From positions 868,001 through 932,000 of the forward strand of contig MU008174.1 in NCBI GenBank assembly GCA_010909165.1: 64,000 bases of DNA, read 5' to 3'. Shown piece after piece: positions 9,015-44,989 of the stretch. Source of the stretch: Anthoceros angustus. Lineage: Eukaryota > Plantae > Anthocerotophyta. Under the pieces are notes generated by a model. That model saw only the letters and a program-made list of their open reading frames with translations. It searched no databases and was not told the DNA's origin. How positions within the stretch are numbered: the first letter of the stretch is position 1; each line of letters begins with the position of its first letter. Both the position numbers and the translations under genes were made by a program.

Positions 9015-9087
9015 GGTCGCGTGGCCTAATGGATAAGGCGCTCGCCTCCGGAGCAGGAGATCGAGGGTACGAGTCCCACCGTGATCG
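9015..9087 (+). tRNA. tRNA-Arg-CCG: tRNA-Arg(CCG), degenerate (probable pseudogene)
   Basis: GGTCGCGTGGCCTAATGGATAAGGCGCTCGCCTCCGGAGCAGGAGATCGAGGGTACGAGTCCCACCGTGATCG: 73-nt cloverleaf with anticodon CCG. T-loop reads GTACGA instead of GTTCGA, with single mismatches in the anticodon and T stems. Confidence 0.8.
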
Positions 9088-10018: not shown

Positions 10019-10092
10019 GGCCTATTAGCTCAGTTGGTTAGAGCGTCGTGCTAATAACGCGAAGGTCGCAGGTTCGAAACCTGCATAGGCCA
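10019..10092 (+). tRNA. tRNA-Ile-AAT: tRNA-Ile(AAT), intact
   Basis: GGCCTATTAGCTCAGTTGGTTAGAGCGTCGTGCTAATAACGCGAAGGTCGCAGGTTCGAAACCTGCATAGGCCA: paired stems, intact A and B boxes, T-runs downstream. Confidence 0.95.
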
Positions 10093-21568: not shown

Positions 21569-22436
21569 TTACGATGAGCTGGTCGTAGATTCGGAGGGCC
21601 CGTTCCCAAACACATCGTTCAGGACGTTCCAAGAACAGAACGACTGTGAAAGTAGCATCAGAGCCTGCAGGAATTGGCACTCAGAATGGGCTAAGGTTTG
21701 CAATTTGATGAACCCAATAGGCAAAGGAGCAAGTACAGATTAGAAGCGGAATGCAAGGCAGAGGTCGAAGTACCTCTTTGACTCCCACATCAGCATCGCA
21801 GCTCTCCAGCTCCCGCATGTTCTGTACCTCCAACGTGTTCAGAAGTTGAATAATCGTGATAGTCGACACAGGCAAAATCTCCAAGGCATCGGTCACCATG
21901 AAGGATAGATTCTTCTTCACAAATCCTGTCTTCCGATGTGATACGACGCATTCGCTCGACTTCCGGACATCGGCCAGCCAAACTTCCTCTGTCATAGACA
22001 GTTTTCGGCAAGAGGGACAATACTGGGAACTGCTTCTAGAGATCCATACGCTGCACCGGCCATCTCTGCACCGGTAGTACAGCTGAGCGGGCGTCTCGCC
22101 GTCTCTGTCCCCAGCCTCCAGCTGCAGCAGCGACGCTTTCTTGATATGCTCGCTCGCAGTCGGAGTCAGCAAATCTGATTTCTCAACATACAAAGCAGGC
22201 TCCTCCAACTTCCTCACGCTGTCTGCAACGTTAGCGATGGAAGCAAGACTCCTGGAAATGTTGAAATCCGGCTTGCAGCTGGCCAATCGCGTCAAGATGG
22301 TCCCCACGGGCAGCACCAAGAAGCTCAAAAGAAGATCCACAAAATCCTTGCCGGCCTCCATGTAAAGCACGCGCTTGGTCCGCTTGTGCTTCAAGAGCCT
22401 CACCGTCATCTTGGGGCCACATTCCGACTCCTCCAT
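21569..22436 (-). CDS. DUF674 family protein, subfamily B (intact)
   Basis: Close paralog of 13122-13991 with the loop YYRCRDGRCSVWISRSSSQYCPSCRKLSMTEEVW; GT-AG intron 21665-21773; stop TAA at 21569. Confidence 0.9.
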
Positions 22437-23805
22437 CGTACTGCCCACCAAGCGAGCGAACCAGCCACCGCTGTCCACCAAACGAGCGAGCAAGACGCGT
22501 TTGCTTCGTCTCCTAACGATGCACCGATCTTCGAATCCGCGCGTCGCGCAGCATTTAATTTCGCACGAGCTGGAAGATCGACATCAGATTTTGCAGTTTT
22601 GCAGCTAGGCAGCTCTGGCACGCCTAAAATTATCCTGACAGACCTTTAATTAGCCTAGCAAATCTGTTTATCTCGCAGCATCTGTATCTGTCCGGACCCC
22701 ATTCGCCGGACTAACGAATCTTGTCAGGGAAGCCATCATCATCCGTCGGACATCAAAGATAGCAGTTATTGTCTGCCCACTTCCCTGCTGCAACCCAAAT
22801 GCATCAAACCAAATCTGTATGTAACCTGGCATGCATAGATGGCATCAAACGAAATGGCATAAATAAATCGATTGGCTTCATACGAGGGCCATCCACGGGT
22901 GCTCCGGGTGCTGATCGGTAGGCTTCACTCTTGACTGCCTTCAAGTGACAATTTGCAGGCTCGCTAAAGGATAGCTTAACATTCGATGCGTGGAAGAGGG
23001 CTCCTCATAAGAGTAGCGGCGTAAGGAATGTAGTTGAAATTTGGCAATAGTAGTCCTCACTATCTATGAGGTAGGATGTTAGAAATCAAAGTAGAACAAT
23101 GGTTGCAGGTTCACAAACACTGAGTAAATTCATACTCTCCAGACTCTAAGAATCGTAGTATCATGCACCGACAAGCAAAGAAGACCTCCCTCCAACTTCA
23201 AAGAGAGTAATTTCAACACGGAAAAGTAGACCGGGGCATGAGCCCATAGCAAGGATCTCTTCACCATGCCTCTAGACACTTTCCCAATTGCCTTTGAGCA
23301 TTGTGATCTTAGTGATCTTCCTTCCTTCGCAGGTAAATCGCCTCTCCTCTCCTCTGTTTGTCTTATGGCTAATGTGTTTCTCCTCCAGAAAAACATACTT
23401 CTCCACTTCACTTCATTGTGCTGCCGGAGCACTCTTGGCCGCGACCCGGTGACCTGAACAGTTTCCGAGGAAGCCGTGAAATAGCTCATTTTGTGGGTCA
23501 CTTGACAAAGGTGAAAATCTTCCATCGGCCCGCCGATGGAAGATGCCATGCTATGAGATTCAAAAGTTCCATTCAAAAGGACGGAGGCGCAGCCAAGGTC
23601 GGCTCTCTTGTCCAGGTGTCTTTGTCTGCCCCTGGTCAAACGTTCAGGAATCCAGGATGTGTCAGACATATCTGCAAAAGGCTCCGACACAGGGGCTGTC
23701 CATTGCCAACACGAAGAGCCCTCTACAAGATGTTCGAGGTAACTGTATTCCGGGCGGCAGATAAAACGGTGAAGAAAACTGGTATGTACAATGCAGCTTT
23801 CATAG

Positions 23806-24048
23806 CTGGCGAAACACGCAACCGTTGTGGTGCTTGTCATGCTCACGATGGTGAGCATTCAATGCGTGGCACAGGCGTCCAACAAGACTGGTGGGTCCCA
23901 CTCCCATGTCCCCGACCACTTTCATCGTCGACTTTTGGTCTGTGGATCCCACAGACCTTGCTACTATGGAAATTCACCACCTTGTGTCTTCCCTTACTAC
24001 TGTTCCCCGCCTCCGACTCCGAGTCCTGTGTTTTCGCCTCCTGAATGA
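23806..24048 (+). CDS. Secreted 4-Cys/polyproline peptide, copy 1 (start codon mutated ATG to CTG)
   Basis: (L)AKHATVVVLVMLTMVSIQCVAQASNKTGGSHSHVPDHFHRRLLVCGSHRPCYYGNSPPCVFPYYCSPPPTPSPVFSPPE is colinear over 243 nt with copy 3. Confidence 0.65.
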   Translation: MAKHATVVVLVMLTMVSIQCVAQASNKTGGSHSHVPDHFHRRLLVCGSHRPCYYGNSPPCVFPYYCSPPPTPSPVFSPPE

Positions 24049-24244
24049 AACCGCCTGGTGGGCACATGTGCAAACCAAGCTGGAGCTGCATCAAGTTTAT
24101 CATGCCTAGGCTAGCTGGTATGCATTTAAGTCATTTCCTTTGGGGCCATAGCTTGTAAGACTGCAAGGTGTATGCAGAGGCATTCACAACAGCGATGTCT
24201 CCAATGTTCAATGGTTGTTTTGCACCTTGAGACTAGTGTGGCTG

Positions 24245-24490
24245 TCTTGAATTCTTCTTCACGAATCCACTGTTGCGTTGGGATACTACCTTGCCGGTGG
24301 GCTTTTGGACCTGTCATCCAAACCTGTTGCGTCATATGCTTGCGGCAAGAAGGACATTTGGTACTAGTGGTCGTCATCCATATATTGGTCAACCTAGAAA
24401 CAAAACCATATGCATCGGTAAAAGAAGTGACGCAGCAGCACCGGTAGTACAATTGAGCAGGCTTCCTTTCATCTCCGGCGCCCGTAGCCC
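24245..24490 (-). pseudogene. DUF674 subfamily-B internal fragment (Cys-loop region)
   Basis: ERKPAQLYYRCCCVTS...NIWMTTTSTKCPSCRKHMTQQVW is nearly identical in DNA to 31890-32130 and is truncated at both ends. Confidence 0.85.
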
Positions 24491-26114: not shown

Positions 26115-26222
26115 GCAACACTGGTGGGACCCAGGTCACGACCACCGTCACCATCGACTTCTGGCATGTGGGTTTCAGTGGGTTTGCCCCTACGCAATTT
26201 CTGAACGTAAACGGACGGGGTA
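26115..26222 (+). pseudogene. Degenerate relic of the Cys-rich peptide gene
   Basis: AACACTGGTGGGACC...GACCACCGTCACCATCGACTTCTGGCATGTGGGTTT reads NTGG / DHRHHRLLACGF with a frameshift, next to a PPR tail fragment as in copies 2 and 3. Confidence 0.65.
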
Positions 26223-26234
26223 AAAGAACCCTAA

Positions 26235-26512
26235 ACCATGCTTTTTACCTCCGACTGACAAGCTATACACCAGTCCGTGTCTGTCCACCAGCTCTGGCGC
26301 TCTGGCCTGGCTGCTTCCATGCGATGTCTTCTCTCCTTGCCTGCATCTCCAGAACGCCTCCCAGATCTCAGATCTCGACACTAGTGCATATGTTGAACAT
26401 CAGCACATGCATATGCTGCGGTATGTGTTTCATCTAGCTTTTCTACTTCATTGAAGGCATGGAGACGGTCACCTCCATATTCCTCCATTTTTCACAGGCT
26501 GCACCAGCAGAC
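26235..26512 (-). pseudogene. PPR E1/E2/PG-box fragment
   Basis: GAACEKWRNMEV...HAFNEVEKLDE...AWKQPGQS..WWTD is a frameshifted copy of the 3' end of the PPR gene at 39332. Confidence 0.85.
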
Positions 26513-27142
26513 TGTACTGCAAACTCTACACTGCTGCAATCTCTACTCTGCAGAAACTGCGTCAATCCTGACTCTGTTGAAACTCTGGTGACCTGCCTAT
26601 CGCAGCCAAAGTCCTTGATCAGCCTCGCTTTTGCAATTACATGAATAACCACGGTTAAAAGACCGGACCTTGTGCCATGTGACACTGTGCAGTACAGCAA
26701 GAAAATTATAAATCAATCGTAGCTTGTGCAGATGCGTGTGTGCATGCTCACAGGAATTTATCACATTCTCCAAAATTGTAAAACTTGCTCGATTACATGC
26801 AAGGCACATCAGAGTCATGACCTCTGGAGAGACGGACATTCCTAGAAAGAAAACGACACATGGACACATTTGTAAATATGTATAGTAGCCTACAGCTAAT
26901 TCCTCACTGACATATCTTCAGATTCTGACCATTCTCTCTTTTGTCCTCCCAAAGACTGTGCAACAGCTACGCAAGCCATTTACAGCGACAGCAACCAAAC
27001 AAAACCAAAACCAAATCCAAAACTGTTTCATGCAATAATCTAACAGGGTAACAGCTTGCCTTGCCACTCTCCACCGAGCAGCAACCACATGCTGGCCTTA
27101 AGGCCTCAGTCTCGGCACCAAAACCAGAGCGACTTGCGAAGA

Positions 27143-28012
27143 TTATGACGAGCGTGCCTTGCCTGGCTCTAACACATCATTCAGGACATTCCGAGAACTG
27201 AAGGACCTCGCCAGCAGTGTCAGAGCCTGCAGAGATTGGCACCCAAAACGTTCAGGTTGGCAAAGTATGTAATGATCCCAATGGGAGGCGCGGAGGGGCA
27301 AGTACGGGAAAATGCGACATTCGAAATGCAGAGATCGCATTACCTCCGTGGCTCCAACAGCGGCTGTAGAGCTCTCCAGATCCCGCATGGTCTGGATGTC
27401 CAATTTATTGAGCAGATCGATACTCGAGATAGTCGACATAGGCGAGATTTCCAAGCCATCAGTCACGATGAATGTTGAATTTCTCTTCACGAATCCACTC
27501 TTGCGTTGGCATGCTACCTTGCTGGTGGGCGTTTGGACCTCCGCCATCCAAACCTGTTCCGTCATTTTGGTGCAGCAAGAAGGACATCTGCCACTTCCGT
27601 TATTCATCCAGAAACTACTATCATTTTGCGCACAAAGGCCGCAGTTGCACTGGTAGTACAGTTGAGCGGGCTTTTTTTCATCTGTAGCGCCCTTAGCCTT
27701 CAGCTGCAGCAGCGACGCTTTAGTGATATGCTCGCTCGCAACAGGAGTAAGCAAATCGGATTTCTCAACATACAAAGCCTGACCGTCCAGCTTTCTCACG
27801 CTGCTGGCCACGTTAGCCATAGAAGCCAGACTCTCCGACAAATCCCAAGTCTTGAAGCTAGCCAATCTCGTGAGGATGGTCCCCACGGGCAGCACAAGGA
27901 AGCTCAGAAGTAGATCCACGAAGTCCTTCCCGGCTTCCATGTAAAGCACCCGCTTGGTGCGTGCGTGCCTCAAGATCTTTACAGTCATCTTGGGTCCACT
28001 ACCCGACTCCAT
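27143..28012 (-). CDS. DUF674 family protein, subfamily B (intact)
   Basis: MESGSGPKMTVKILRH...YYQCNCGLCAQNDSSFWMNNGSGRCPSCCTKMTEQVW...; GT-AG intron 27227-27343; stop at 27143. Confidence 0.9.
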   Translation of the reverse strand: MESGSGPKMTVKILRHARTKRVLYMEAGKDFVDLLLSFLVLPVGTILTRLASFKTWDLSESLASMANVASSVRKLDGQALYVEKSDLLTPVASEHITKASLLQLKAKGATDEKKPAQLYYQCNCGLCAQNDSSFWMNNGSGRCPSCCTKMTEQVWMAEVQTPTSKVACQRKSGFVKRNSTFIVTDGLEISPMSTISSIDLLNKLDIQTMRDLESSTAAVGATEVMRSLHFECRIFPYLPLRASHWDHYILCQPERFGCQSLQALTLLARSFSSRNVLNDVLEPGKARSS

Positions 28013-29130
28013 CCCCGTCCCCAGCAAGCGAGCGACCCAGCAAGCAGGCAGGCGAGCGAGCGAGCGAGCAATGCAAGTCGCGGTTGCTACTGCGACTTGA
28101 CGAGTTCGAGACGCCAGCGGGCCGACTATATACCCGATCGGGTCCGTCGAATTGCGCAGCATTTAATTTCACACCAGCTTGAGATCAACAGCAGATTTTG
28201 CAGGTTTTGCAGCTGCAAAACGGACAGCCCTAGATGTACAGTGATTATTAGCCCACAAAGTTTGTTTAGCCACCTCATCTGTCCGGACCTGATCCGCTGC
28301 GCTAGCCATGTACGTAATCTGTTAGGAATGTCATCATCATCCATCGGACATCAAAGACTGTGTTATTTGCCAATGTCTCTGCTTCAAGCAAAAATGCCAT
28401 CCAATAAAATAGTCCATGTACATATGTAGATAGGTAATAGTCCAGGAAACCCGCACATGGCTCCGATTCGCTCCATACGATGGTCAATTCGTTGGTGTCG
28501 ATCAACTTGTTGTGCCTGGAAGGGACAATTTCAGTGATGACCGCAAGGGGGTGGCAAGTTGCAACTCTCAAGGCAAACGGGAAAGTGTGCAGAGACTTAG
28601 TAGCCTCGCCAATGGAGTGTCGACAGTTTGTGCCACCTCCAGGTCTCCAGCAGTGCAAGACCTTGGAGACTGTGAGAAACGGCTGAAAACCACAATAAAG
28701 TGAGTGAGGCCCTCCTCCTCAGGAGGAGGCTGACCCCAGGCCTGGCCGTCGGTGACGTGTCCTCACTATGTCCAGCCATGGTGGATGCCCCCACCATGCC
28801 CAGCCATCGCGTACGCATCTCCACAAGGAAGATGCGATGCTATAGCATTCCAAAATTCCATTCAAAAGGGCGGACCCAAAGCCAAGGTCGTCTCTCTTGT
28901 ACACTCGTCCATGTCCGCCCCTGGTCAAAGTTCAGGAACCCAAGGCATGCCAAACATACAAAAGACTCCAGCAGGGGATGGAACAAGAAGAGCCCTTCAG
29001 AAGCTGTTTGAGGGATTCGGGCGGCAGATACAACGGTGAAGACAATCTGGTACGTACAATTCAGGGCTAGCTCGTCCGGAATACAATACTTACGCTTATG
29101 GACATGGCTCGTGCTGCTGCAGCGTTATAC

Positions 29131-29361
29131 ATGGCGAAACTCGGAACAGTTGTGGTGCTTCTGATGCTCACGATGGTGAGCATTCAATGCGTGGCACAGG
29201 CGTCCAGCAACACCGGTGGGTCCGACTCCTATGTCACCGACCACTTTCACCGTCGACTTCTGGCCTGTGGATTCCACAGACCTTGCTACTACGGAAATTC
29301 ACGACCATGTGTCTTCCCTTACTACTGTTCCCCGCCTCCGCCTCCCAGTCCTATGTTTTAG
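29131..29361 (+). CDS. Secreted 4-Cys/polyproline peptide, copy 2 (last 4 residues lost to a TAG)
   Basis: MAKLGTVVVLLMLTMVSIQCVAQASSNTGGSDSYVTDHFHRRLLACGFHRPCYYGNSRPCVFPYYCSPPPPPSPMF*PPE*. Confidence 0.78.
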   Translation: MAKLGTVVVLLMLTMVSIQCVAQASSNTGGSDSYVTDHFHRRLLACGFHRPCYYGNSRPCVFPYYCSPPPPPSPMF

Positions 29362-29599
29362 CCTCCTGAATGAAACAGCCTGGTGGGCACATGTGCATCC
29401 CAAGCTGGAGATGCATAAAGTTCATCCTGCCCAGGCTATCTGGTATGCATTTAAGTCCTGCCCTTTGGGGCCATAGCTTATAAGACCGCAAGGCTTATTC
29501 TGAGGCATTCACTACAGCGATGTCTCCACTGTTCAATGGTTGTTTTACAACTTGAGACTAGTGTGGCTGGCTTAGTATGTTATCTACCAACTTATTAGG

Positions 29600-31561: not shown

Positions 31562-32443
31562 TTATGACGAGCAAGCGCTGGCAGGCCCAAACACTTCGTT
31601 CAGAACATTCCGAGAACTGAAGGACTTCGCCAGCAGTGTCAGAGCCTGCAGAGATTGGCACCCAAAACGTTCAGATTGGCAAAGTAATGATCTCAATGGG
31701 AGGCGCGGAGGGGCAAGTACGGAAAAATGCGACATTCGAAATGCAGAGACCGCATTACCTCCGTGGCTCCAACAGCGGCTGTAGAGCTCTCCAGATCCCG
31801 CAAGGTCTGGATGTCCAATGTATTGAGCAGATCGATACTCGAGATAGTCGACATAGGCGAGATTTCCAAGCCATCAGTCACGATGAATGTTGAATTTTTC
31901 TTCACGAATCCACTCTTGCGTTGGGATACTACCTTGCCGGTGGGCTTTTGGACCTCTGTCATCCAAACCTGCTGTGTCATTTTCGTGCGGCAAGAAGGAC
32001 AGTTGGTACTAGTGGGCGTCATCCATATATTCAACATGGAAAAAGAACCATTTCTATCTGTAGAAGTGAAGCAGCTGCACCGATAGTACAATTGAGCAGG
32101 CTTCTTTTCATCTCCGGCGCCCGTAGCCGTCATGCTGCAGCAGCGAAGCTTTGTTGATATGCGCGCTCGCAACCGGAGTCAGTAAATCGGATTTCTCAAC
32201 GTACAAAGCACGACCGTCCAGCTTTCTCACGCTGATGGCCACGTTAGCCATGGAAGCTAGACTCCCCGAGGAATCCAAGGCCTTGGAGCTAGCCAACCTC
32301 GTCAGGATGGTCCCCACGGGCAGCACAAGGAAGCTCAGAAGGAGATCCACGAAGTCCTTCCCGGCTTCCATGTAAAGCACCCGCTTGGTGCGCGCGTGCC
32401 TCAAGATCTTTACAGTCATCTTGGGTCCACTACCCGACTCCAT
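31562..32443 (-). pseudogene. DUF674 subfamily-B gene with one 1-nt frameshift and a promoter deletion
   Basis: Paralog of 27143-28012. CAGCATGACGGCT versus CAGCTGAAGGCT shows one extra A near 32133, and both halves are otherwise open. About 60 bp of promoter between CCAGC microhomologies is missing. Confidence 0.82.
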
Positions 32444-33309
32444 CCCCGTCCCCAGCAAGCGAGCGACCCAGCAAGCAGGCAGGCGAGCGACCGAGCAATT
32501 CAATCAGCGGTTGCTTCTGCGCCTTGACGATTTCGAAACGCCAGCGTGAGATCACCATCAGATTTTGCTGTTTTGCAGCTGCAAAACGGACAGCCCTATT
32601 TGTACAGTGATTATTAGCCCAGCAAGTTTGTTCATCCACCGCATCTGTCCGGATCAGATTCGCTGCTCTAACCATGTACCTAATCTGTTGGGAATGTCAT
32701 CATCATCCATCGGACATCAAACACTGTTATTTGGCCCAAGTCTCTGCTGCAAGCAAAATGCCATCCATGAGATGAAACCTGTTCCGTCATCTAAGTAGAT
32801 TTGTCTTTGTCCAGCAAACCCCACCCAGTCCAACATTGCTGGATTCGGTTCCTTTGAAGGGCCAACTTCAGCGATGACCGATAGGGGGTAGCAACAAGCA
32901 TGGCAAAATTGGGAGAGCGGACAGCTTCCAGCCTGGAGGTAGGAAAAGAGAAAAAGAAGTATATTAAAGTCTATGAAGACGGAATTTTGGAGAAGTATAT
33001 TAAAGTTCGCAAAGGACAGAAATTTCGTCTCGGACTCGGAAGGTATAGATACATAAAAACATTCAATCGAGCATTAAATCTTGAATTGATTTAACAGCTG
33101 AATTTGACCTAAATACTAGTGGCATGAAGTATACTCAAACATTTAGCAAGTTGGACATACTTTGTTCAAAACTCCCACATATGTTTCAAGCATAGTTTTG
33201 CAATAATAGGGTTGGGAAAAGAAAACAAACCTCGGAGCGAAGAAGACCAAGCTACTGTAAATAAGTTCAGAAAAGTATTCCTAATATAATATTCTCGTAG
33301 ACGGGCCAG

Positions 33310-33500
33310 AGAGAAACAAAGTGTTTTTCAATCTCAACTTCCCTGTTGCCTAACCTGCATATTCTGGTCTCCTGGCTTGTATGCAACGGCTATCTATCAG
33401 TCTCAATCCTAAGACGGTGAGACCCCACTCTAAGATGATCTGTAATCATCCTAAATTGGAAGGACGCGGTTGCGAAGTTGGAGTGGAAACAAATGTCTCT
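33310..33500 (-). mobile_element. RTE-like LINE fragment
   Basis: Matches 10985-11160, for example CTCAATCCTAAGACGGTGAGACCC. Confidence 0.75.
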
Positions 33501-33559
33501 CAGTTCATAAGTCTGGAGTTTAGTGGGTATGGATATAGAGACGAAGGCCAAGTGTACGA

Positions 33560-36500
33560 AAGATAAGTCGATTGCAATTCATTGCAAATCGACCTATTGG
33601 AAGGAGGAGGCAAAAGTCTCCTCCGTTGATTCCCATGGCGACGAGGGGATGCTCGTTCGAGGACTGGGAGGGCATTTTAAAGGCTATGAAGCAGGACTTC
33701 GAGGCCGTAATACAGGGCCTTCAATCCCATCTGGTAGACTTGGAGGCGGCCACCAAGGTCAAGGTCTTGGAAGAGGCCAATGCCCATCTGCAAAAGAAAC
33801 TGGAGAAATCGAAAGCAGACATCGAGTCTCTAAAGGCTGATATTGTGCCCTTGCAGTTATGCAATGGAGACTTGGCCCATGTATTACGGGAGGAAGAGGC
33901 TTCCTGGTCAGCAGATATTCAAGCCCTTCAAGACTCTGCTGAGGACTTTATGCTTAAATTGGTTAAAATTTCCAATCAAGAATGCTTCAACTCCATCCGC
34001 AAGTATATCTGCAAGCAAGTTGACTAGGAGCTTCGGGCACGTCCTTCTGTAGAACCTGCCCAGTCATATGCTATAATTACTCCCCCTGCTATTGTGAATG
34101 CAACTATTCAAGAGTCGCATGACCGTGATAAGTGATCAAAGAATATCCGTATTACTGGTATTTTTGGTGACACGCCTGAGGCTGCTGTTAGGAATTTTCT
34201 GGCGCACACCATTGAAGTCAATGTCCATTTTGAACATGCTTGGAGAGTTGGTAAGGGCCACTCTCATCCTCCAACTTTCATTGTTCGCTTCCACTCCCTT
34301 GAGAACAGGTTGCAGGTGTTGCGGCAATGTACTTCTTTGAAAGGCTTGGAGGCCTCCAAGCCTAGGTTTTCCTAGGTTTTCATCAACCTAGATCTCACCC
34401 CCACCCAATGGGCTTACAAGAAGGATCAGTTGCTGGTATGCAAGTAGGCAAAATCGGAAGGACGACTGGCATATTTCGTTGATGACAAACTGATTATTAG
34501 AGACAATGTGCAAGGCCGGCCTCCTCCAAAGGAAAGCGAGGCCCGTATTGTTGCTGCCGACCTCCACCTGGCCTCTTGGATTTGCAATGGTTCTATTTTC
34601 TCTAAACCGGGTGGAATTCTTCAGCTCCGGATCCTTACGAGTCATGACATCGTCTTCTTGATCGAAACCCATGAGCACCATACCCGCTCTATGGCTTCTT
34701 TTCTAGGTTTTCAATGTCTTTCCTCTTTTCGACATCATGTCTCTAGTAACTCGGACAAGGCCTTTGGAGGTAGATCGCCTGCTATCTCGTGAGTCCCTGG
34801 CTGCCTTTATCTCTCTGGTCAGGATTGATGTGCAAAGCACCGTTCTATGGGTCAAGATTTCCACCTCCCTTCTGTCTTCAGTACGTGACCTTTATATGGG
34901 TGTTTGTTATTTTCCTCCCCGGTCCTCCAGATATGTTGCAAATGGTGTCGACCCATATGTCGACCTCTCCGAATCTTGTGTCTGAGTTTTCTTCTATTGC
35001 CGACATTCTCCTTGTTGGCAATTTCACGGCCTGGACTAGTTGCCAGCAGGCTTCTATTTATGATTCTATGGACTCTGACAAATTATTCCAACTGGACTCA
35101 TAGGATTTCGAGCTCAACAGGTTTTCTGATGACACCCATGAGGTCAATGCCTATGGCTCTGCCTTATTACAACTTGTTGAGGCTCACAATCTCCTCATCT
35201 TCAACGGTCTACCACGCTGGTCGTACAGTTGCAAAAATTCTTTCTTTTGCGGCGATGGTCATACTTCAAGTAGGTTGGATTATATTATTGAAGATGCTCA
35301 ACTTCTTTCCCACATCTCTAATCTGCGGACTAATGACGATGTCCGCATTGAATCTGACCATGTGGCTGATTGCTTTCAGCTTTGTGCCTTGCCTACCTCT
35401 GCACCTCTCTCTCCCCCACTCTCTATCACCACCCGCTTCCGCCTACCTTCTAGAAGGGGGTTTCAACCTCATTCCACTTGAAAGAAACATTCTGATGTAA
35501 ATACACCATGCATCCCTCTTCCTCGGCTATTGTTTCTTCCGCTAGGTCTATCTTTCCATTCAAATTCAACCTCTCTCCATCCCACAAAAATACTGCTCCC
35601 CTCCACCCTTGGTTTGATGCCGATTGTAAGCGCATGCGCTCCCAATTGCACCAGACCCTCCGCCAACTCCAACTTCCACCCTGGTCTCACCACTCTCCTC
35701 TCTATAAAGCTACTATAAAGCCTTACAAGACCTTCCTCTCCATGAAAAAGGCTCAGTTCTTCCAAACCGAACATAACCGTCTCAGCTCCCTCTTGTAGAT
35801 GTCTCCTGGTGGCTCAACCTTCAGGAAGAAATTTCATTCTAGGTCCCCCTTTCTCCTCAAAGCTAATCCCAAACTTCTTTCCTTTATTTGTTGATGGACT
35901 TTACCATATCCCCTCTCCTATCCCCGCTCCTAAGTCCTCTGATCCTCGTCTAAGGTTTTTTTCGCCAGATCTCGTAGATAGAGCCATAAAGAAGCTTCGG
36001 AGCAGGACTGCTATGGATCCTGCTAGCATCCCTGGAGACCTCTTTCGTTGTGCTGACCTTGTCTCACTCTCGTCTCACCTTGCTTCCTTTTTCAATGATG
36101 CTCTCCCCATGGATTTCCGGATAGCTGGTGTGAGAATGATATTCATCCAATTTTGAAGACTAATGACCCTTATCTCCCTTCTAACTATCGGTTTATTATT
36201 GTGGAGTCCATTTATGCCAAGATTTATAGCTTTTGTTTGGAGATTCTCACTACTTCTCGGGCTGAGGAGGATAAGGTGCGTGCTCGGGGTCAAGCTGATT
36301 TTTGCCCTCATCGGAATACTATGAACAACATCTTTACTCTCAGGGCTATTGTTGACGAGGCGCGATCTCTAAAGAAACATGTCTATTGTTGTTTTGTGGA
36401 TTTCAAGAGAGCCTTCAACTCTGTGCCTTAGGACAAGCTCTTTGATCGGTTGAAGTCTTTGAGGATGCCTCCACACATCCAGCATGCTGCTACTCTCTTG

Positions 36501-37995
36501 TATTCTTGTGTCTTTGCTCGTATTCAGACTCCCTCTGGCTTGGCTGCTCACCAGATTCCCATCCAGCTTGGCGTGAGAGAGGGTGACCCATTATCTCCTA
36601 ATCTGTGTGGTTTCTATATTGATAAACTTGAGGAGCGGCTTCTTGCAACAGGTGGCTGTGGAGCCTATTTGTTCCTTAACAGTATTCCGATCCTATTTTA
36701 TGCTGATGATATTGTCCTTTTCTCCTACACCGCTAAAGGTTTGCAATGGCAACTTGATGTGCTCTCTGACTTTTGCATTGCCAAGGGTGTTTCTGTTAAT
36801 CTTCGCAAGATAAGGATCATGAAGTTCAATTCTAGGGACTACAATGGCGTGGGCAAATTCTACTATCAAGGAGAGGAGGTGGAAATGGTCCACTCTTATA
36901 CTTATCTTGGAGTCAAGATTTTTGGCCCCAAGTTTAATTTGACTGCTTCTGCTTCCTCTGGTGCTACTCACTGTATCGCCTCGGCGTGCACTCTCAGACC
37001 CTCCTCATATAGGATGCATATTCAAGATATCAACCTCAGGAAGCGCCTATTCAACTCTCTGGTCATCCCATCTACTATGTATGGCGCAGAACTCTGGGGC
37101 CCCGATCTCTTGCCTTCTTCTTGGCCTAAGGTGGAAAAAGTACATGCTTCTTTCCTTCATGCTCACATCGCCTGTAAGTGCTCTACCCCTCTTCATGTCC
37201 TTCTCTCTGAATTTGCCGCCTTTCCCTTAGAACTTGATGGTCTCTTCCGTCTCTCCTCTAACCTTTACCGCCTCCATCTTCTTAACCAACAAAACCCTCA
37301 CCTCCCTCCTTACCTTCTCCTTTCTTTTCGGTCGTCTAGATCTCTCTAAGCTGATCGCTCTATTTCTTGTTGGTATGCCAAAGCCTCCATGTGGCTGAAG
37401 CGATACTACTTTAGTCCTTCTACTCACCCTGTTTGGCCACCCTTCAATTACCCGATCACCCCCACACTCTCCTTCTAACCACCTTATCCGTAAGGCAATC
37501 AAATTTCGATACCTCCGCCTTACTTGATACCCTATTCCCTCTGCAGCTCCTCTTTCCACCAAGCTTCTTTACTATGAGGAGCACTAACGTGTGATCTCTC
37601 TGTCTAGCTTCCCGAAACTGCCACGTTACCTTAGTTCCCCCATATCTTTCAAGCTTCGCTCTTTAACTAGTCAATTTCATGTCAGCTCCCATCACCTCCG
37701 GGTTGAGACTGACCGCTGCCTAGCAGCGCTTTTTCTCCTTTCATATTCCCAAGCTCTCTGCTCTGTGTCTTTGTGAGATGCTTGATCACAGGCTGTCCTT
37801 GCTTGGCCCCCTGTAACTTTCTTGTCAATCCTCCGTCTTTTTATTTTCCATGTTTGTGTTTCTCTATTTCAGATGTATGTATGTGTACAAATGTATGTGT
37901 ACACCCTCCTTCATCCAATTTACAGCTGTACAAATGCTGTCTCATGGTAATTTTTCCACCCTAGTAGACATAAATAAAATTGTTCTTTATTGTTG
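33560..37995 (+). mobile_element. Near-full-length degenerate LINE (RTE/RTEX-like: ORF1 + APE-RT ORF2)
   Basis: Coiled-coil/RRM-like ORF1 remnants (AWRVGK...FIVRFHS...FINLDLTP). APE motifs SWICNG, DIVFLIETH, GNFTAW, DYII, SDHV. RT motifs FVDFKRAFNSV, GVREGDPLSP, FYADDIVL. 3' end AATAAA plus TTG-rich tail. Many stops and frameshifts; boundaries approximate. Confidence 0.9.
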
Positions 37996-38794
37996 AGTGA
38001 GGTTCGATTCCTGGCAGCATTCGATTCCCGGCAGCGCTGTCCATCAAACGCGGTACAATATCTGTAAAATATTTAGCCCAATCTTGGATATAAAACAAGT
38101 TTCCGGAGGCGCCCGGGCGTCTTTGCCAAATGCCGGCATGGTGGGCCCCACGGCTTAGTGTGCCCCCGATTCAGTTTGGAAGGTTTAATAGCCTCCGGCT
38201 TGACCCAGCAAATTTGTTTATCCTCCGCATCCGTCCGGACCAGATTCGCTGCATTAACTATGTACATAGCCTGTTAGGAATGTCGTCAGCATCCATCGGA
38301 CATCAAAGACTACATACGTATGTTATTTGGCCACGTCTCTCCTGCAAGCAAAATGCCATCTAATGAAATAGTCCATGTGTGTGGTGTAGACAGAGTGATC
38401 GATGGCCCCACCATGCCTAGCCATGCTGCATGCCCACATGCGGATGCCCCCATCCGCAGTGATGGGCATCGCATATCCATCTCCAGATGGAAGGTGCTAT
38501 GTTATAGGTTTCCAAAATTCCATTCAAAAGGGCGGAGCAGAAGCCGAGGTCGTCTCCCTTTTCCTCTCGTCCATGTCCGCCCCTGGTCAAAGTTCAGGAA
38601 TCCAAGGCATGCCAAACATACAAAAGACTCCAGCAGGCGATGCAACAACAAGAGTCCTCCAGAAGCTGCTCGAGGCATTCGGGCCGTCAGAGACAACGGT
38701 GAAGAAAAATTGGTATGTACAATTCAGGGCTTGCTCGTCTGCAATACAATGCTTACGCTTATGGACATGGCTCGTGCTGTTGCAGCCTTCATAC

Positions 38795-39037
38795 ATGGCG
38801 AAACACGCAACCATTGTGGTGCTTGTCATGCTCACGATGGTGGGCATTCAATGCGTGACACCGGCGTCCAGCGACACTGCTGGGTCCGACTCCCATGTCA
38901 CCGACCACTTTCACCGTCGACTTCTGGCCTGTGGATTCCACAGACCTTGCTACTACGGAAATTCACGACCATGTGTCTTCCCTTTCTACTGTTCCCCGCC
39001 TCCACCGCCAGGACCCGTGCCCTTGCCTCCTGAATGA
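38795..39037 (+). CDS. Secreted 4-Cys/polyproline peptide, copy 3 (intact, 80 aa)
   Basis: MAKHATIVVLVMLTMVGIQCVTPASSDTAGSDSHVTDHFHRRLLACGFHRPCYYGNSRPCVFPFYCSPPPPPGPVPLPPE: hydrophobic signal-like N-terminus, RRLL, C-x5-C-x7-C-x5-C, SP5. Confidence 0.82.
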   Translation: MAKHATIVVLVMLTMVGIQCVTPASSDTAGSDSHVTDHFHRRLLACGFHRPCYYGNSRPCVFPFYCSPPPPPGPVPLPPE

Positions 39038-39331
39038 AATAGCCTGGTGGGCACATGTGCAGCCAAAGCTGGAGCTGTATCAAGTTCGTGCCTAGGCTAG
39101 CTGGTATGCATTTTAGTCTTGCCCTTCGGAGCCATGGCTTGTAAGCCTGCAAGGTTTATGCTGAGGCATTCACAAAGGCGATGCCCTTAATGTTCAATGC
39201 GAGGTTGATTTGAACTTTGGGTGTGGCTGTCCTGGCCTGTTACCTACTTACGGGGTACGCCATAACCGGCCAGCTTCTGCCAGTGCCCAGGCAAAGGACT
39301 GCATCACCAGTTTTAGTCCTGCACTGTCGAG

Positions 39332-41785
39332 TCAAAATGGCGGATACCCTTCTGTCTTTATTCTGGGACCAAGTTGTTTCAGCATTGCGTATATGGCTTC
39401 CATGCCAGGATGCCTTTTATCCCCGACCGAAAAACTGTGCACCAGTCCTTCCATGTCTGTCCACCAGCTCTGGCCCGGCTGCTTCCATGCGATTCCTTTT
39501 CTCTTTGCCTGCATCTCCAGAACGCCCTCCCAGATCTGGGCACTAGTGTATATGTTGGACATCAACACATATGCTGCGGCATCTGCTTCATCTAGCTTCA
39601 CTACTTCATTGAAAGCATGGCGACCCACCTCCACATTGCTCCACTTTTGACAGGCACCCAGCAGAGTGCGCCAAACTGCAGCATGGGGCTGGACAGGCAT
39701 GGTTCTCACCACCGCAAGTGCCTCCACAAGTTGGCCTGCTCGACCCAGGAGGTCCACCATGCATGAGTAATGCTCGGGGGTGGCCTTGATGCCATACTGT
39801 CTGCTCATACTCTCGAAGTACTCTCGCCCCTTCTTCACAAGACCCACATGGCTGCACACTGTGAGTACACTAAGGAACGTGATGCTGTCAGGCCGTAGGC
39901 CATCTCCTCTCATTTGCTGAACCAGGTTGAAGACCGTCTGGCTGTCTCCTTGACGAGAGTATCCTGCAATCAGCGCATTCCACGAGAATATGTCTCTGTC
40001 AGGCAATTCGTCAAACACCTGCTGTGCATCACCCATGCTCCCGGACTTTGCATACATGTTTATCAAACTGGTGGCTACAAGCACATCACGTTGGAGCCCT
40101 TCTCTTTCAATCTCAACATGAAGGTGCCTTCCTAGATGCAAGGCTGCCACACTTGCACAGGCTTGCAGGAGGGAAACAAAAGTCACAGAATCAGGAGAAG
40201 TGATCCCTTCTTGCTGCATACTGCTGTACAGACGAAGAGCCTCCTGACCCTTGCCTTGCTGGGAGTATCCTGCTATCATGGCATTCCATGTCACTACAGT
40301 TTTCTGAGAAAGCTTGTCGAACATGCTCTGAGCATCCTCTAAGCTGCCACACTTAGCATACATGTTTACTAGGCTGCACCCTACAACCACATCACTTTGA
40401 AGTCCACGTTCTACAATTTGTCCGTGAATCTGTTTCCCACTCTGCAACGCCACAGTACCCACACTCGCACATGCCTGCAGGACGCACACAAAAGTCACAG
40501 AATCGGGAGTCACAATGGCTTCTTCTTGCATACTGCTGTACAGCCGAAGGGCTTCCTGACCCCTTGCCTGCTGGGAATATCCTGCTATGATGGCATTCCA
40601 AGTCACCACATCTTTTCGATGACGGGCGTCAAACACACGTTGAGCATCCTCCAGACTGCCACACTTTGCGTACATGTTTATCAAGTTATTGCCTATTGTC
40701 ACATCAGCTCGAAGGCCTAGCTCTCCAATCTGAGAATGAAGCAGCTTTCCTGTGTCCAGAGCGGTGGTACCCACACTTGCACACGCCTGCAACAGGCACA
40801 GAAATGTCACACAATCTGGTGGAGTGATGCCTTCTTCTCGCATAGCACTGTACAGATCAAGGGCTTGCTGACCCATGCCCTGCTGGGAATACCCTGCAAT
40901 CAGAGCGGTCCATGTCACCACATCTTTCTGAGAAAGTCCGTCAAACACTCTCCGAGCATTTTCCAAGCTGCCACACTTTGCATACATGTCCACTAAGCAA
41001 CTACAAACAAACAGATCAGGCTCAACCCCACTGGCCACCACATCAGCATGCACCTGCTGACCAGTGCTCAAGTCTGCTCCTCGTGCACAGGCCTGCAGTG
41101 CTGCCACGAAGACATGGCCATCAGGCTTCAAACTGGTCCTGCGCATCTGATGATAAAGTTGTATGGCCTGCTGAGCTTGTCCGTGTTTGACATGCGCAGC
41201 TATAATGCAAGACCATGTGAACGCATCTGGTTTCCAAACCATGGTGAACACATCCATCGCTTCCTGCAGCATGGCATGAGAAGCATACATTCGCAGAATA
41301 TGATTGCACAAGAACGTGTCCGACTCATACCCCTTCTTCACGCTCAGACCATGCACACGGCGACCCAGAACCAAATCCTTCCTCACCACACATTCTTTCA
41401 GGACAACATGAAAGAGAGATCGAGAAACTCGACACTGTACCCGCACCAGAACTCCCAGAGCCTCAACCGCCTCCTTCACCTGCTTCTGCTGACATAGCTC
41501 GCTCACAGTTTCAGCCGTCACGCTCCATTCGTATCCCGTAGGCCTGGCACGGTCAGGACCATCCCGCAAGCTCCAGTTGGATGCAAAATCTCTACCCCCC
41601 ATCTGCATATCCAGAGCAATCGGGCACATGGAGCGCTTCTTCTTCCTCTTCCTCGTCCTGCTGTCCCACCTCCATGCTGGGCGGGCTGGAGCTCTTTCTC
41701 CAGTTCCTGTCAACCCAACAATTTGCTGACCCTGACCCCACGACGGGTGCATGTCCTGTCGCCGACGGAGAGAATCGAGCCCCAC
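39332..41785 (-). CDS. PLS-class PPR protein with E1/E2 and WW-type PG box, DYW truncated
   Basis: 817-aa intronless ORF of P-L-S triplets ending WKQPGQSWWTDMEGLVHSFSVGDKRHP...EGYPPF*. The true start may be downstream. Confidence 0.95.
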   Translation of the reverse strand: MGLDSLRRRQDMHPSWGQGQQIVGLTGTGERAPARPAWRWDSRTRKRKKKRSMCPIALDMQMGGRDFASNWSLRDGPDRARPTGYEWSVTAETVSELCQQKQVKEAVEALGVLVRVQCRVSRSLFHVVLKECVVRKDLVLGRRVHGLSVKKGYESDTFLCNHILRMYASHAMLQEAMDVFTMVWKPDAFTWSCIIAAHVKHGQAQQAIQLYHQMRRTSLKPDGHVFVAALQACARGADLSTGQQVHADVVASGVEPDLFVCSCLVDMYAKCGSLENARRVFDGLSQKDVVTWTALIAGYSQQGMGQQALDLYSAMREEGITPPDCVTFLCLLQACASVGTTALDTGKLLHSQIGELGLRADVTIGNNLINMYAKCGSLEDAQRVFDARHRKDVVTWNAIIAGYSQQARGQEALRLYSSMQEEAIVTPDSVTFVCVLQACASVGTVALQSGKQIHGQIVERGLQSDVVVGCSLVNMYAKCGSLEDAQSMFDKLSQKTVVTWNAMIAGYSQQGKGQEALRLYSSMQQEGITSPDSVTFVSLLQACASVAALHLGRHLHVEIEREGLQRDVLVATSLINMYAKSGSMGDAQQVFDELPDRDIFSWNALIAGYSRQGDSQTVFNLVQQMRGDGLRPDSITFLSVLTVCSHVGLVKKGREYFESMSRQYGIKATPEHYSCMVDLLGRAGQLVEALAVVRTMPVQPHAAVWRTLLGACQKWSNVEVGRHAFNEVVKLDEADAAAYVLMSNIYTSAQIWEGVLEMQAKRKGIAWKQPGQSWWTDMEGLVHSFSVGDKRHPGMEAIYAMLKQLGPRIKTEGYPPF

Positions 41786-42142: not shown

Positions 42143-44989
42143 ATGAGGATCTCCAAAGCACAGCGGGAACGGCAGAGAAAGGCTGCTGCCCGTCGCTGCC
42201 GGGAGCTGGAACTGCAGGAGAAGCTTGAACAGACGAAAAGGAGGTGGATCTCCTCTCCATGGCCGTGCCAAGTGTGTTCAGGCGCGGAGGAGGAGCAGTT
42301 TCTTCAAGAAGAGTAAAGCCTGGACGATGTTTATATGTTGTCTAGCATTTGCACATGGATTCTGGACGAGATGAAAATTTTGTACTATGGGTGTTACAGG
42401 TTCACTCCTCTGTGGCCTCTGGATTCCAGAAGTGACTGTAAGGGTTCTATCTCGTTCGGCCTTGTGGAGTGAAAATGCTTGTTTCCTCTGATTCTGTGTT
42501 CCAGCGTTCTAATTGCTGAGAAAGTCATGCAGGCTAGGTTCTTAGAAAGTCAAACAGCAAGGGACTTGATGCAAGCCGACTGCCAGATATTTGCATGGTC
42601 TTGTAGGGTTCGAATGGTTGTCTGCCTTGATGCGTCTTTCCAGCTTTCGTTTTGGCTGAGGAAGGAAGGGAGGCAGGCCAGGGTATTGATCGCAAGGTGT
42701 CCTTGTTCTGGCAGTCCAGTTTATCAGAAACGTTGTGCGGAGGAGTTTCAATAATTTTTTGGGTGAGGACAATGGCTTGTCTCTGTGCTTGCGAGAGCTT
42801 TCAGACATGGAGGTAGCAAGGAGTACACCCTTTCTACTGAAGACGCTGAATGTCCAGGCTTTGCAAGCCATTCTTTCCTTGTTTACCACACGTCGCTTCG
42901 AGAAGCTCAATAACAGGGCCTGGCTGGAGAGCAGGATCGGACGGAGGCTTTTGGGAATTAGCCTGAATGAAGAATCTATCTCTGAAACTTTGAAGCAGGT
43001 GGTAGCCATTGTAAGAAATCCCAGGTCAGCACTCGCATATGTGCCTGTGAGTGTCCTGTCTGACTTACCATCAGCACCTGTACTTGCTGCAAAGGAGGCT
43101 ATGGCAAGGCTTGATAATCTTCCTCTGCAGACGCTCTCTGTTATGAGGGAGGTCATCACTGGGAAACCGCCTTCAGAAGTGTCTTTGCTGAAAGCCAAGT
43201 ATGTCGGCAATAAGTCGAGACATATGCTTACCGTCCAGAGAGGAGCAGCACGGCTGATCCGAGAGGCCGAGGATAGTGGGAGATTGCCAGCTTTGTTGCA
43301 AAGGACTCTACTCGTTATGAGCCTTTCTGCACGAGCTTTAATTGGTGATGATGGAGAGCTGAGAGACTATGTCGAGGTACAAAACAGGGGCAGCGAAGCT
43401 CTGCAAGACCAGTTGCTGTCTGCTTACTCTTTGATTGAGAACTTCAATCTGCAACAGTTGGAAGATGCCTATTTGGCCATGACACAGCAGGCAAGGGACG
43501 ATGCCGACTGCAGACATAAATACTATGATTTCCACTCTAAGAAAAAGCAGGAATCAGATCGAAGACATCCCAATGACTACAGGCAGTCCATAAGGAGGAT
43601 CTTGTTTGACTACATTATTAGGAGTGGAGTGCAAGGGCCGCCACAACACGTGAGAAAGGCGGTGGTGGCCATGCTTGCCAATGACAGCCAGAGACGGAGA
43701 AGCCGTAAAAGTAGACTGCTCCTTTGGTTGAAAGAGCAGTTTCAAGAAGAAGTGACAAGTGTGACAGAGTTTGCCTGTCAACTAAGAGATGTCGTTGCAG
43801 GAAGAGAACATGGATTAAGTGAGTTGTCTGATGGGACAGACACAGAGTCTCCAGATGATGTGGATTGGCACTCTGATGACAGAAGAGAGCATGAGTGCAA
43901 CACAGATCTTGATCCAAATCGAGAGATGCCCAGAACCTCTCGTGTAGAAGAACAGGAAGTGCATCCAAGCGTGGGGAGGATACCGGTAGATGGTTCTCAG
44001 GGGGATCGTTCTCCTGTCGTTCATGGGGCAATCTCTGATCCAGTAGGTCCGGAATTGTCTCAGGAACCTACAAATGTCCTCAACTCTCAGGGGCATCCCG
44101 GTGGGATTCACTCGTCCAGGCCAGTGAGCAACCCATCGAGCAACCCCTCTCGGCAGGGAAGAAATAGGTCCATGAACACAACCTCAATTACGCGACGGAG
44201 TTCTCAGGAACCTGTGTCTTTTCATGCAAGCAGTGCAGCAGTAGAATCTCGTCCACAACCAACTGAAGCGTCCAGCTCGAGTGACTCTGAAGATTCGACT
44301 CCTCTGTACATACTCAGTCAGTCTGAATGGCGTCAAACAGGTGATCAAAACAACTGCCCAGAGTCTCCAAGACCTGACCACGATGGCTCCAGCCTTCCAG
44401 AGCAGCAGAAAGGGCAAATTTCACGACCCAAACGCTTCGGGACAGTAGACAAGGTCACCACTGCTGACAGGAAGAGGCAAAGGGTTGCCGATAAAGCAGC
44501 TGTGTTGACTTACAACTTTATCGGTCAAGCCATGGAGGCAGGCAGGAGGAGGCTGGGAACATCAGTGCCCACGCATGCAACGAAGTACCTGGCTGGCATT
44601 GGGTCTCAAAATCCAGGTGAGCTATGATGGTGGAACATGCGGCCCCATCAACTCCAACCCAATGCGCAGCATGAAAGTAGTAACTGGCAAGTCTCATGCA
44701 ATTCTACTCGAGTCTCATGCAATTCTACTCGAGTCTCATGCTAATCTGATCCTGTTGCAGCAACGGAGAACGTAGGTGCCTCTCAGCAGCTCAGCGAAGA
44801 TGAGATGCTCCTCAGCCTTGTCGAGAAACTTCCTTCCATGTCCGAGAGGTTGTGGCTGACACACAACCTGCCCTTTGTAGCCAGAGCATGTCATTTATAC
44901 ATGGATCTCCAGGCTGAGACTTGCCTCATCTGTGTGCTTGTATGTACAGGGCGGTGGAGGCTGTGAGGCGCCGATTCCAAGCCCGTTAG
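42143..44989 (+). CDS. Conserved uncharacterised plant protein (recalled similarity to the Arabidopsis At5g40520 family), about 5 exons
   Basis: ATG 42143 (MRISKAQRE...KRRW), a small exon near 42400-42436, a 630-codon main exon (LDNLPLQTLSVMR, LQDQLLSAY, RQSIRRILFDYI, TYNFIG), and two short 3' exons ending RRRFQAR* with GT-AG boundaries. The family call is from memory and needs BLASTP. Confidence 0.7.

Follow-up and report, generated by a model that had tools for sequence, protein, structure and literature searches.

The gene studied here belongs to a small family of peptide genes which lies in the window (the whole 64,000-nt stretch of hornwort DNA analysed) together with DUF674 genes, a retroelement fragment and a PPR gene. 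The coordinates of the features are collected in Table 1. The ORF under study, hereafter named copy C, has the layout of a precursor with a signal peptide, a short pro-region containing RRLL, a four-Cys part and a Pro-rich tail. This layout had been proposed earlier from inspection of the DNA letters (hereafter, the sequence-only reading); it is supported by the features predicted here, and every motif on which it was based (hydrophobic N-terminus, HFHRRLL, four-Cys core, YY, FP(F/Y)Y and SP5 followed by PPE) is present in the 80-aa precursor.

The hydrophobic N-terminus of copy C corresponds to residues 5-18 and reaches a Kyte-Doolittle hydrophobicity of 3.0 over 12 residues, which was matched by none of the 258 other ATG-initiated ORFs of at least 50 aa in the window. 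According to the -3/-1 rule, cleavage of the signal is predicted after Cys20 or after Ala24. Ser25 is preceded by A-Q-A in copies A and B (see below) and by T-P-A in copy C, so that cleavage after Cys20 is also possible in the latter. The pro-region is a short stretch rich in Ser, Asp and His, with HFHRRLL at residues 38-44 and the RRLL tetrapeptide at residues 41-44. The predicted mature peptide of 36 residues (window:38927-39034:+) begins with A-C-G-F-H-R-P-C-Y-Y, and a size of about 3.9 kDa and a pI of about 7.9 were calculated for it, i.e. it would be weakly cationic. Its four Cys are located at residues 46, 52, 60 and 66, with the YY pair after the second one and FP(F/Y)Y before the fourth. 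The precursor is shorter than about 160 aa, has a predicted signal peptide and has four conserved Cys in its C-terminal, mature portion, as expected for a small secreted Cys-rich pre-pro-peptide.

Table 1. Features of the copy C gene, its sister copies and neighbouring genes (window coordinates).
Feature	Position	Strand	Observations
Copy C coding sequence	38795..39037	+	ATG start, 80 codons (80 aa) plus TGA; sole fully intact copy; inside the exact 695-nt X1 contig
Predicted signal peptide, residues 1-24	38795..38866	+	Lys3, then 14-residue hydrophobic run
Pro-region, residues 25-44	38867..38926	+	RRLL at its end (38915-38926); motif inspection of the copies
Cys core of the predicted mature peptide, residues 45-66	38927..38992	+	C-x5-C-x7-C-x5-C; motif inspection
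Pro-rich tail, residues 67-80	38993..39034	+	SPPPPP, then a variable stretch, ending in PPE; motif inspection
3' UTR and downstream end of the duplicated module	39038..39247	+	Homology with copies B and A to about 39247; runs towards the 3' end of the convergent PPR gene
Putative non-coding exon 1 (5' leader) of copy C	38469..38712	+	244-nt X1 contig ending just before GT; 5 upstream ATGs
Putative 73-nt GT..AG intron in the 5' leader	38713..38785	+	Ends 9 nt before the ATG; X1 contigs stop and start at its borders; junction itself unobserved
Copy B	29131..29361	+	ATG kept; TAG at codon 77; 76 aa; tail four residues short
Copy A, probable pseudogene	23806..24048	+	CTG replaces ATG; putative intron upstream has lost 58 nt
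Relic of a fourth copy, 63 nt	26139..26201	+	H-R-L-L-A-C-G-F stretch kept, then internal deletion and stop codons
DUF674 gene paired divergently with copy B	27143..28162	-	Pfam PF05056, E=2e-32
Sister DUF674 copies	21681-22493, 31693-32172	-	Pfam; E down to 3e-34 among the three copies
E-type PPR gene, downstream of and convergent with copy C	39332-41785	-	Pfam: E motif, no DYW-domain match

Copies of the peptide gene and the duplicated unit

Two more full-length copies, named B and A, were found by tblastn and DNA alignment, and the alignment of the three copies, 243 nt long, contains no indel. The earlier claim of an 80-aa precursor conserved without frameshift in three copies stands as far as the reading frame is concerned; it does not hold for the precursor as a whole, because the start codon of copy A has been lost (CTG) and a TAG interrupts copy B at codon 77. 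The RRLL tetrapeptide and all four Cys are invariant across the three copies. RRLL is said to be kept also in the relic of the fourth copy, the retained stretch of which reads H-R-L-L-A-C-G-F. The sequence adjoining this relic (26238-26514) matches the 3' end of the PPR gene (39410-39668); in the region 26139-26514 the RLLACGF part is thus joined straight to sequence like 39410-39668. This suggests that the junction between the peptide gene and the PPR gene was itself once duplicated and then internally deleted.

The peptide module comprises about 780 nt and extends over 38467-39247 (copy C), 28805-29587 (copy B) and about 23535-24249 (copy A). The tandemly duplicated unit is formed by this module and a divergently oriented DUF674 gene, with a shared spacer between them. 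In the third unit a retroelement, with an RVT_1 domain at 36450-37349 (E=8e-14), splits the DUF674 half from peptide copy C, and its insertion accounts for the spacing of 9.7 kb in this unit versus 5.3 kb in the other units. The wider block of the retroelement fragment spans about 32770-38200 and occupies the position that the shared divergent spacer has in the other units. The ORF of the third DUF674 copy (31693-32172) is much shorter (159 aa).

Several other features of the window were noted. The PPR gene contains internal 312-nt repeats at 40147-41070, and its 3' end lies under the same X1 contig as copy C (see below). The variant letters over this gene stem from contigs of paralogous PPR genes that passed the 90% likeness limit, and so they are no evidence of RNA editing. 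Two tRNA genes (Rfam RF00005, 45.5 and 70 bits) are located 1 kb apart on the plus strand, at 9015-9087 and 10019-10092, and a 630-codon plus-strand ORF at 42735-44627 gave no Pfam match.

Transcript evidence

One public run, X1, covers the region; it is only guessed to be RNA, and its contigs carry no strand information. Two X1 contigs match the window without mismatches, one at 38469-38712 (244 nt) and the other at 38785-39479 (695 nt), and coverage is zero on 38713-38784 as well as on 36681-38309, which contains retroelement and intergenic sequence. The contig ends fall on a plus-strand GT (38713) and a plus-strand AG (38785), i.e. on the borders of the putative leader intron, and both splice sites are kept in copy B. 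The single-base indels found in the leader relative to copy B indicate that the leader is not coding. Three stretches of 31 nt or more that copy C shares letter for letter with copy B are crossed by the two contigs without a break. If genomic DNA of this genome had been assembled with k=31, contigs should end at such shared stretches, and hence unbroken ones are not expected from genomic DNA.

Taken with the position of the contig ends, this makes it probable that copy C has a plus-strand transcript whose first exon is non-coding; the contigs are strandless and the second one overlaps the 3' end of the PPR gene. Copy B is apparently silent in the X1 sample, since the 31-mers that it shares with copy C do not interrupt the contigs of the latter. 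The sequence-only reading had made the peptide gene depend on the existence of a transcript, and the X1 contigs, from a run guessed to be RNA, make such a transcript probable.

Five ATGs are present in the leader upstream of the ORF. Those at 38573 and 38609 are read across the putative splice, in a frame which ends at 38858 and therefore overlaps the main ATG. Upstream ATGs are common in the leaders of plant genes. The overlapping ones count against efficient translation of copy C unless the true transcription start lies further downstream.

Constraint on the coding sequence

Stop codons are scarce on the plus strand of the module (0.028 per codon, versus 0.038 for the window), with about one stop per plus-strand frame across the ORF, in all three frames. 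Because the plus-strand frames are nearly free of stops here, an open frame alone is weak evidence for coding. Long plus-strand open frames overlap the ORF in different frames, at 38320-39033 (237 codons) and at 38402-39037 (211 codons). A longer protein starting at 38320 or 38402 was rejected: 1-nt differences in length between the copies disrupt the frames upstream, homology begins only near 38467, and no Pfam match was obtained. ORFs of the opposite strand had no Pfam match either, and an RNA family was rejected as the identity of the locus.

Over the whole ORF, the substitution pattern is close to neutral. Identity between copies is 88-90% in the ORF and 89% in the upstream leader of the C/B pair, i.e. 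the ORF is no better conserved, and the differences are spread evenly by codon position (9/7/9, 11/9/10 and 8/7/8). The lineage-specific ratios of non-synonymous to synonymous changes, 10:5 for copy C, 5:3 for copy B and 9:4 for copy A, match the neutral expectation of 73% non-synonymous changes, and disabling substitutions (2 of about 38) occur at roughly the number expected under neutrality. Indels show another distribution: among the copies, 10 events are found in the flanks (483 nt) and none in the 243-nt ORF (P=0.0065). One of the flank events is a 1-nt indel in copy B; it falls after the 3' splice site and before the ATG, and thus locates the beginning of the coding frame at the ATG.

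Depletion of substitutions was seen in codons 37-70, which extend from the last part of the pro-region, RRLL included, through the Cys core to S-P-P-P. In the lineages of copies C and B this segment has accumulated 2 substitutions versus 13.2 expected from the flank rates (P=2e-4, about 6.6-fold depleted), and 1 non-synonymous change versus 9.7 expected (P=7e-4). In the ATG-less copy A, 7 changes were counted in the same codons versus 10.3 expected, a difference that is not significant and corresponds to the flank rate. The signal region and residues 25-36 also change at the flank rate, and variation within the ORF is highest in codons 71-81, with 7 changes specific to copy C in 33 nt. A dN/dS near 1 had been named in the sequence-only reading as evidence against the gene. 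Such a value (about 1) was obtained for the signal and pro-region, in contrast to 0.2-0.3 for the core; the whole ORF, with its neutral-like ratios, gave 0.5-0.6.

One run of 90 nt (38895-38984) is identical in copies B and C and contains no synonymous change; the next-longest identical run is 28 nt. A single identical run of this kind could be produced by gene conversion, which would give the same picture as selection. Constraint is seen in codons 37-70 only, where, judging from the alignments, gene conversion could explain the identity of copies B and C as well as selection does.

Search for relatives

No described family was recognised. The searches used the coding sequence, which in the proposed gene model falls entirely within exon 2. 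The three copies gave no family in a Pfam-A hmmscan with E-values up to 10, and a word-index protein search found no relative of the peptide. Exact-sequence look-ups of copy C, of copy C extended by three upstream codons and of copy B returned nothing. A HMMER profile search against 1.84 billion protein representatives yielded neither a relative nor a RALF, and its single match, P0001, was discarded as spurious, since it consists of five tandem repeats that share the short stretch W-D-H-F-H-R-R and lack a counterpart of the Cys pattern. P0001 is a predicted protein of 438 aa with five near-identical repeats of about 76 residues, and looks like a translated tandem DNA repeat. Scans of metagenomes found no relative, and a sequence search of the PDB with the alignment profile gave no match, the RALF chains included. 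The ESM Atlas gave a value of 0.82 for the precursor, no result for the mature part and no relative. Hence, the description of the family as unrecognised holds for Pfam, the PDB, the HMMER search, the metagenomes and the ESM Atlas.

Structure prediction with AlphaFold gave a pLDDT of 46 for the precursor. For the mature part, a pLDDT of 73 and a pTM of 0.23 were obtained, and the model, which is of modest confidence, contains short beta-bridges only. A Foldseek search of the PDB with this moderate-confidence model of the mature part returned nothing.

The neighbouring genes serve to gauge these searches. The best database match of the PPR gene has 60% identity, and the contig on which it lies (L001) shows no synteny with the locus and does not contain the peptide; the best match of the DUF674 neighbour has 41% identity. 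These figures indicate that the libraries hold no close kin of the species, and therefore the blank result means that the family is not detectable in distant plants, not that it is unique to the species.

Interpretation of the locus

We regard as slightly better than even the reading that copy C is a functional coding gene for a lineage-specific small secreted Cys-rich pre-pro-peptide, part of a tandemly duplicated unit undergoing birth-and-death decay, in which copy C alone has stayed intact and is transcribed. The unit, composed of the minus-strand DUF674 gene, the shared spacer and the plus-strand peptide gene, would have been duplicated in tandem and then decayed copy by copy, which would leave C intact, B with its tail cut, A without a start and the fourth copy as a relic. 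The mRNA would be formed from a non-coding first exon and the remainder of the gene after removal of the 73-nt leader intron. Translation would begin at 38795, the product would enter the ER, and the signal peptide would be removed near residues 20-24. A subtilase of the S1P/SBT6.1 type in the secretory pathway may then cut after RRLL (residue 44) and release a peptide of about 36 residues (38927-39034, plus strand). The 22-residue core would be stapled by two disulfides, and the 5/7/5 symmetry of its loops would fit a C1-C4/C2-C3 hairpin with a G-N-S turn. Finally, the Ser-Pro5 tail may be hydroxylated and O-arabinosylated, and would form a glycomodule for solubility or stability. As regards the product of copy C, we infer processing, disulfides and glycosylation alike from its motifs.

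The motifs themselves have precedents. RRLL is present in the precursor of moss PpRALF1, and the RR site is where S1P cleaves the precursors of RALFs (PMC9933782); RRLL is also present in Arabidopsis Pro-PME3 (10.1101/2022.07.28.501549). The use of RRXL as an S1P-type cleavage motif, which the sequence-only reading had taken as established, is thus documented, in the form RRLL, for the moss RALF precursor and for Pro-PME3 (PMC9933782, 10.1101/2022.07.28.501549). Ser-Hyp3+ is the motif for contiguous Hyp arabinosylation (PMC8012813), and HPATs, the arabinosyltransferases that act on Ser-Hyp3+, are described as plant enzymes whose family is deeply conserved, with studies in both Arabidopsis and a moss (PMC4738400). 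The same tail had also been proposed to anchor the peptide to the wall. This proposal was not supported: SP3+ occurs just once in the tail, a Tyr cross-linking motif is missing, no other part of the ORF varies as much, and copy B has a truncated version. For these reasons a solubility or stability glycomodule is more plausible than a covalent wall anchor as the predicted role of the SP5 tail.

The alternative that survives best, which we consider rather unlikely though to be taken seriously, is that of a dying or never-fixed orphan gene, whose ORF either coded for a secreted peptide in the past or looks like one by accident. The whole family would be drifting to pseudogenes, copy C would not yet have been hit, and its transcript would be functionless. 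This would agree with the near-neutral substitution of the whole ORF, with the loss of the ATG in one copy, the early stop in another and the decay of a further one to a relic, with the uATGs that overlap the main start codon and with the lack of detected relatives, and the identity of the B and C cores could come from gene conversion. It is less easily reconciled with the single non-synonymous change versus 9.7 expected in the core of the ATG-bearing copies while the ATG-less copy drifts, with the absence of indels from the ORF, with the preservation of a complete pre-pro-peptide layout and with the probable transcription of copy C.

It is improbable, in our estimation, that the ORF is a chance product in duplicated non-coding DNA and that the RNA signal comes from the leader or 3' UTR of neighbouring genes (e.g. 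antisense read-through of the PPR gene) or from a non-coding RNA. The three plus-strand frames are almost free of stops, and the ORF is overlapped by the open frames at 38320-39033 and 38402-39037; conservation of the flanks is about equal to that of the ORF taken as a whole, and the X1 contigs are strandless, the 695-nt one entering the 3' end of the PPR gene. Against these points, the X1 contig ends coincide with a plus-strand GT..AG pair, a signal-like N-terminus of this strength was found in 0 of the 258 control ORFs, the shortage of indels and substitutions is specific to the ORF and its core, and neither the other frames nor the opposite strand have a Pfam match.

If copy C is read as a functional peptide gene, its product would be slightly more likely an apoplastic peptide for defence or interaction with microbes than a conserved developmental hormone. 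This is a guess, and the slight lean comes from the family being an orphan, tandemly duplicated and of fast turnover, with a peptide that is only weakly cationic. A more specific version, which we hold to be distinctly improbable, sees in the peptide a hornwort-lineage functional analogue of the RALF/NCR type: a two-disulfide hairpin with an arabinosylated Hyp tail, released by S1P and either signalling in the apoplast or modulating microbes (e.g. cyanobacterial symbionts) through a partner unrelated to the known peptide receptors. In that case it would represent a new class of ligand in which a Cys knot and a glycomodule are combined.

From its sequence, the family appears to match none of those described and yet to be of an ordinary kind of lineage-specific gene. 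If real, it would be a previously unannotated lineage-specific family of secreted peptides in a non-seed plant, in which the RRxL pro-peptide grammar of RALFs and pectin methylesterases would have been reused for unrelated Cys scaffolds. Its value would lie mainly in annotation and as a test case, the 36-residue candidate being suitable for chemical synthesis and for use in apoplast peptidomics and bioassays. Plant genomes contain many orphan families of Cys-rich peptides, and the general picture would change only if a function or a receptor came to light.

Comparison with known families

The architecture of the predicted peptide has a parallel in Art v 1 and Amb a 4, secreted proteins with an N-terminal disulfide domain and a C-terminal Hyp-rich O-glycosylated tail (PMC8012813), the glycosylation of the tail being a prediction in the case of copy C. 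A disulfide core joined to a Hyp-rich tail is for this reason not a new combination, as had been proposed, since the same layout is known in these two proteins (PMC8012813). They differ from the copy C peptide in their 8-Cys defensin fold, in a much longer Hyp-rich domain, in having no RRxL pro-peptide and in their occurrence in angiosperm pollen, and no sequence similarity to them was found.

As regards the tail, extensins and the CLE, PSY1 and HypSys peptides have in common with copy C a Ser-Pro3+ motif, which by the contiguity rule is predicted to be hydroxylated and arabinosylated (PMC8012813). Unlike an extensin as defined in the literature (PMC8012813), each copy has a single motif, SPPPPP in C and B or SPPPTP in A, and no repeats; there is no YVY-type motif, and no Tyr is present in residues 67-80 of any copy. 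CLE, PSY1 and HypSys are hormones without a Cys core, whereas copy C has one.

Among Cys-rich peptides, alpha-hairpinins are characterised by the pattern CxxxC...CxxxC, and hevein-like peptides by a chitin-binding motif that contains a CC pair (PF00187). The Cys spacing of copy C is different, it has no CC pair, and no Pfam match was obtained.

With regard to processing, the group II pectin methylesterases, pro-proteins processed by S1P or other subtilases at RRLL or RKLL, carry the identical RRLL tetrapeptide at the junction between the pro-region and the mature part. They are enzymes of several hundred residues, and the cleavage motif alone is common to them and to the peptide.

RALFs of clades I-III resemble the copy C peptide in several respects, namely a signal peptide, a pro-region ended by RRxL (RRLL in PpRALF1), a four-Cys mature peptide with two disulfides (predicted in our case) and evolution by tandem duplication, as seen in the peptide family of the window. 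The mature RALF peptide has about 50 aa, with a first Cys loop of x9-10 and a last loop of x5. The Cys core of copy C comprises 22 residues with loops x5/x7/x5, of which the last loop alone agrees, and it is followed by the additional Pro-rich tail. YISY, the receptor-binding motif of RALFs (PMC9933782), occurs nowhere in copy C, and none of the copies matched the RALF profile PF05498 in Pfam at E-values up to 10, in the profile search of the PDB or with HMMER. That copy C is a highly diverged and shortened RALF, acting via CrRLK1L/LLG or LRX partners, is accordingly very improbable: the signal peptide, the PpRALF1-like RRLL, the four Cys, the x5 last loop and the YY pair agree with it, and the missing profile and PDB chain matches (RALF entries included), the missing YISY and the short x5/x7/x5 core stand against it. 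The conclusion of the sequence-only reading that this is not a RALF, drawn there from the YISY motif and the Cys spacing, is upheld and extended by the profile searches. Judged by these features, the copy C peptide resembles RALFs in its processing grammar and is not a member of that family.
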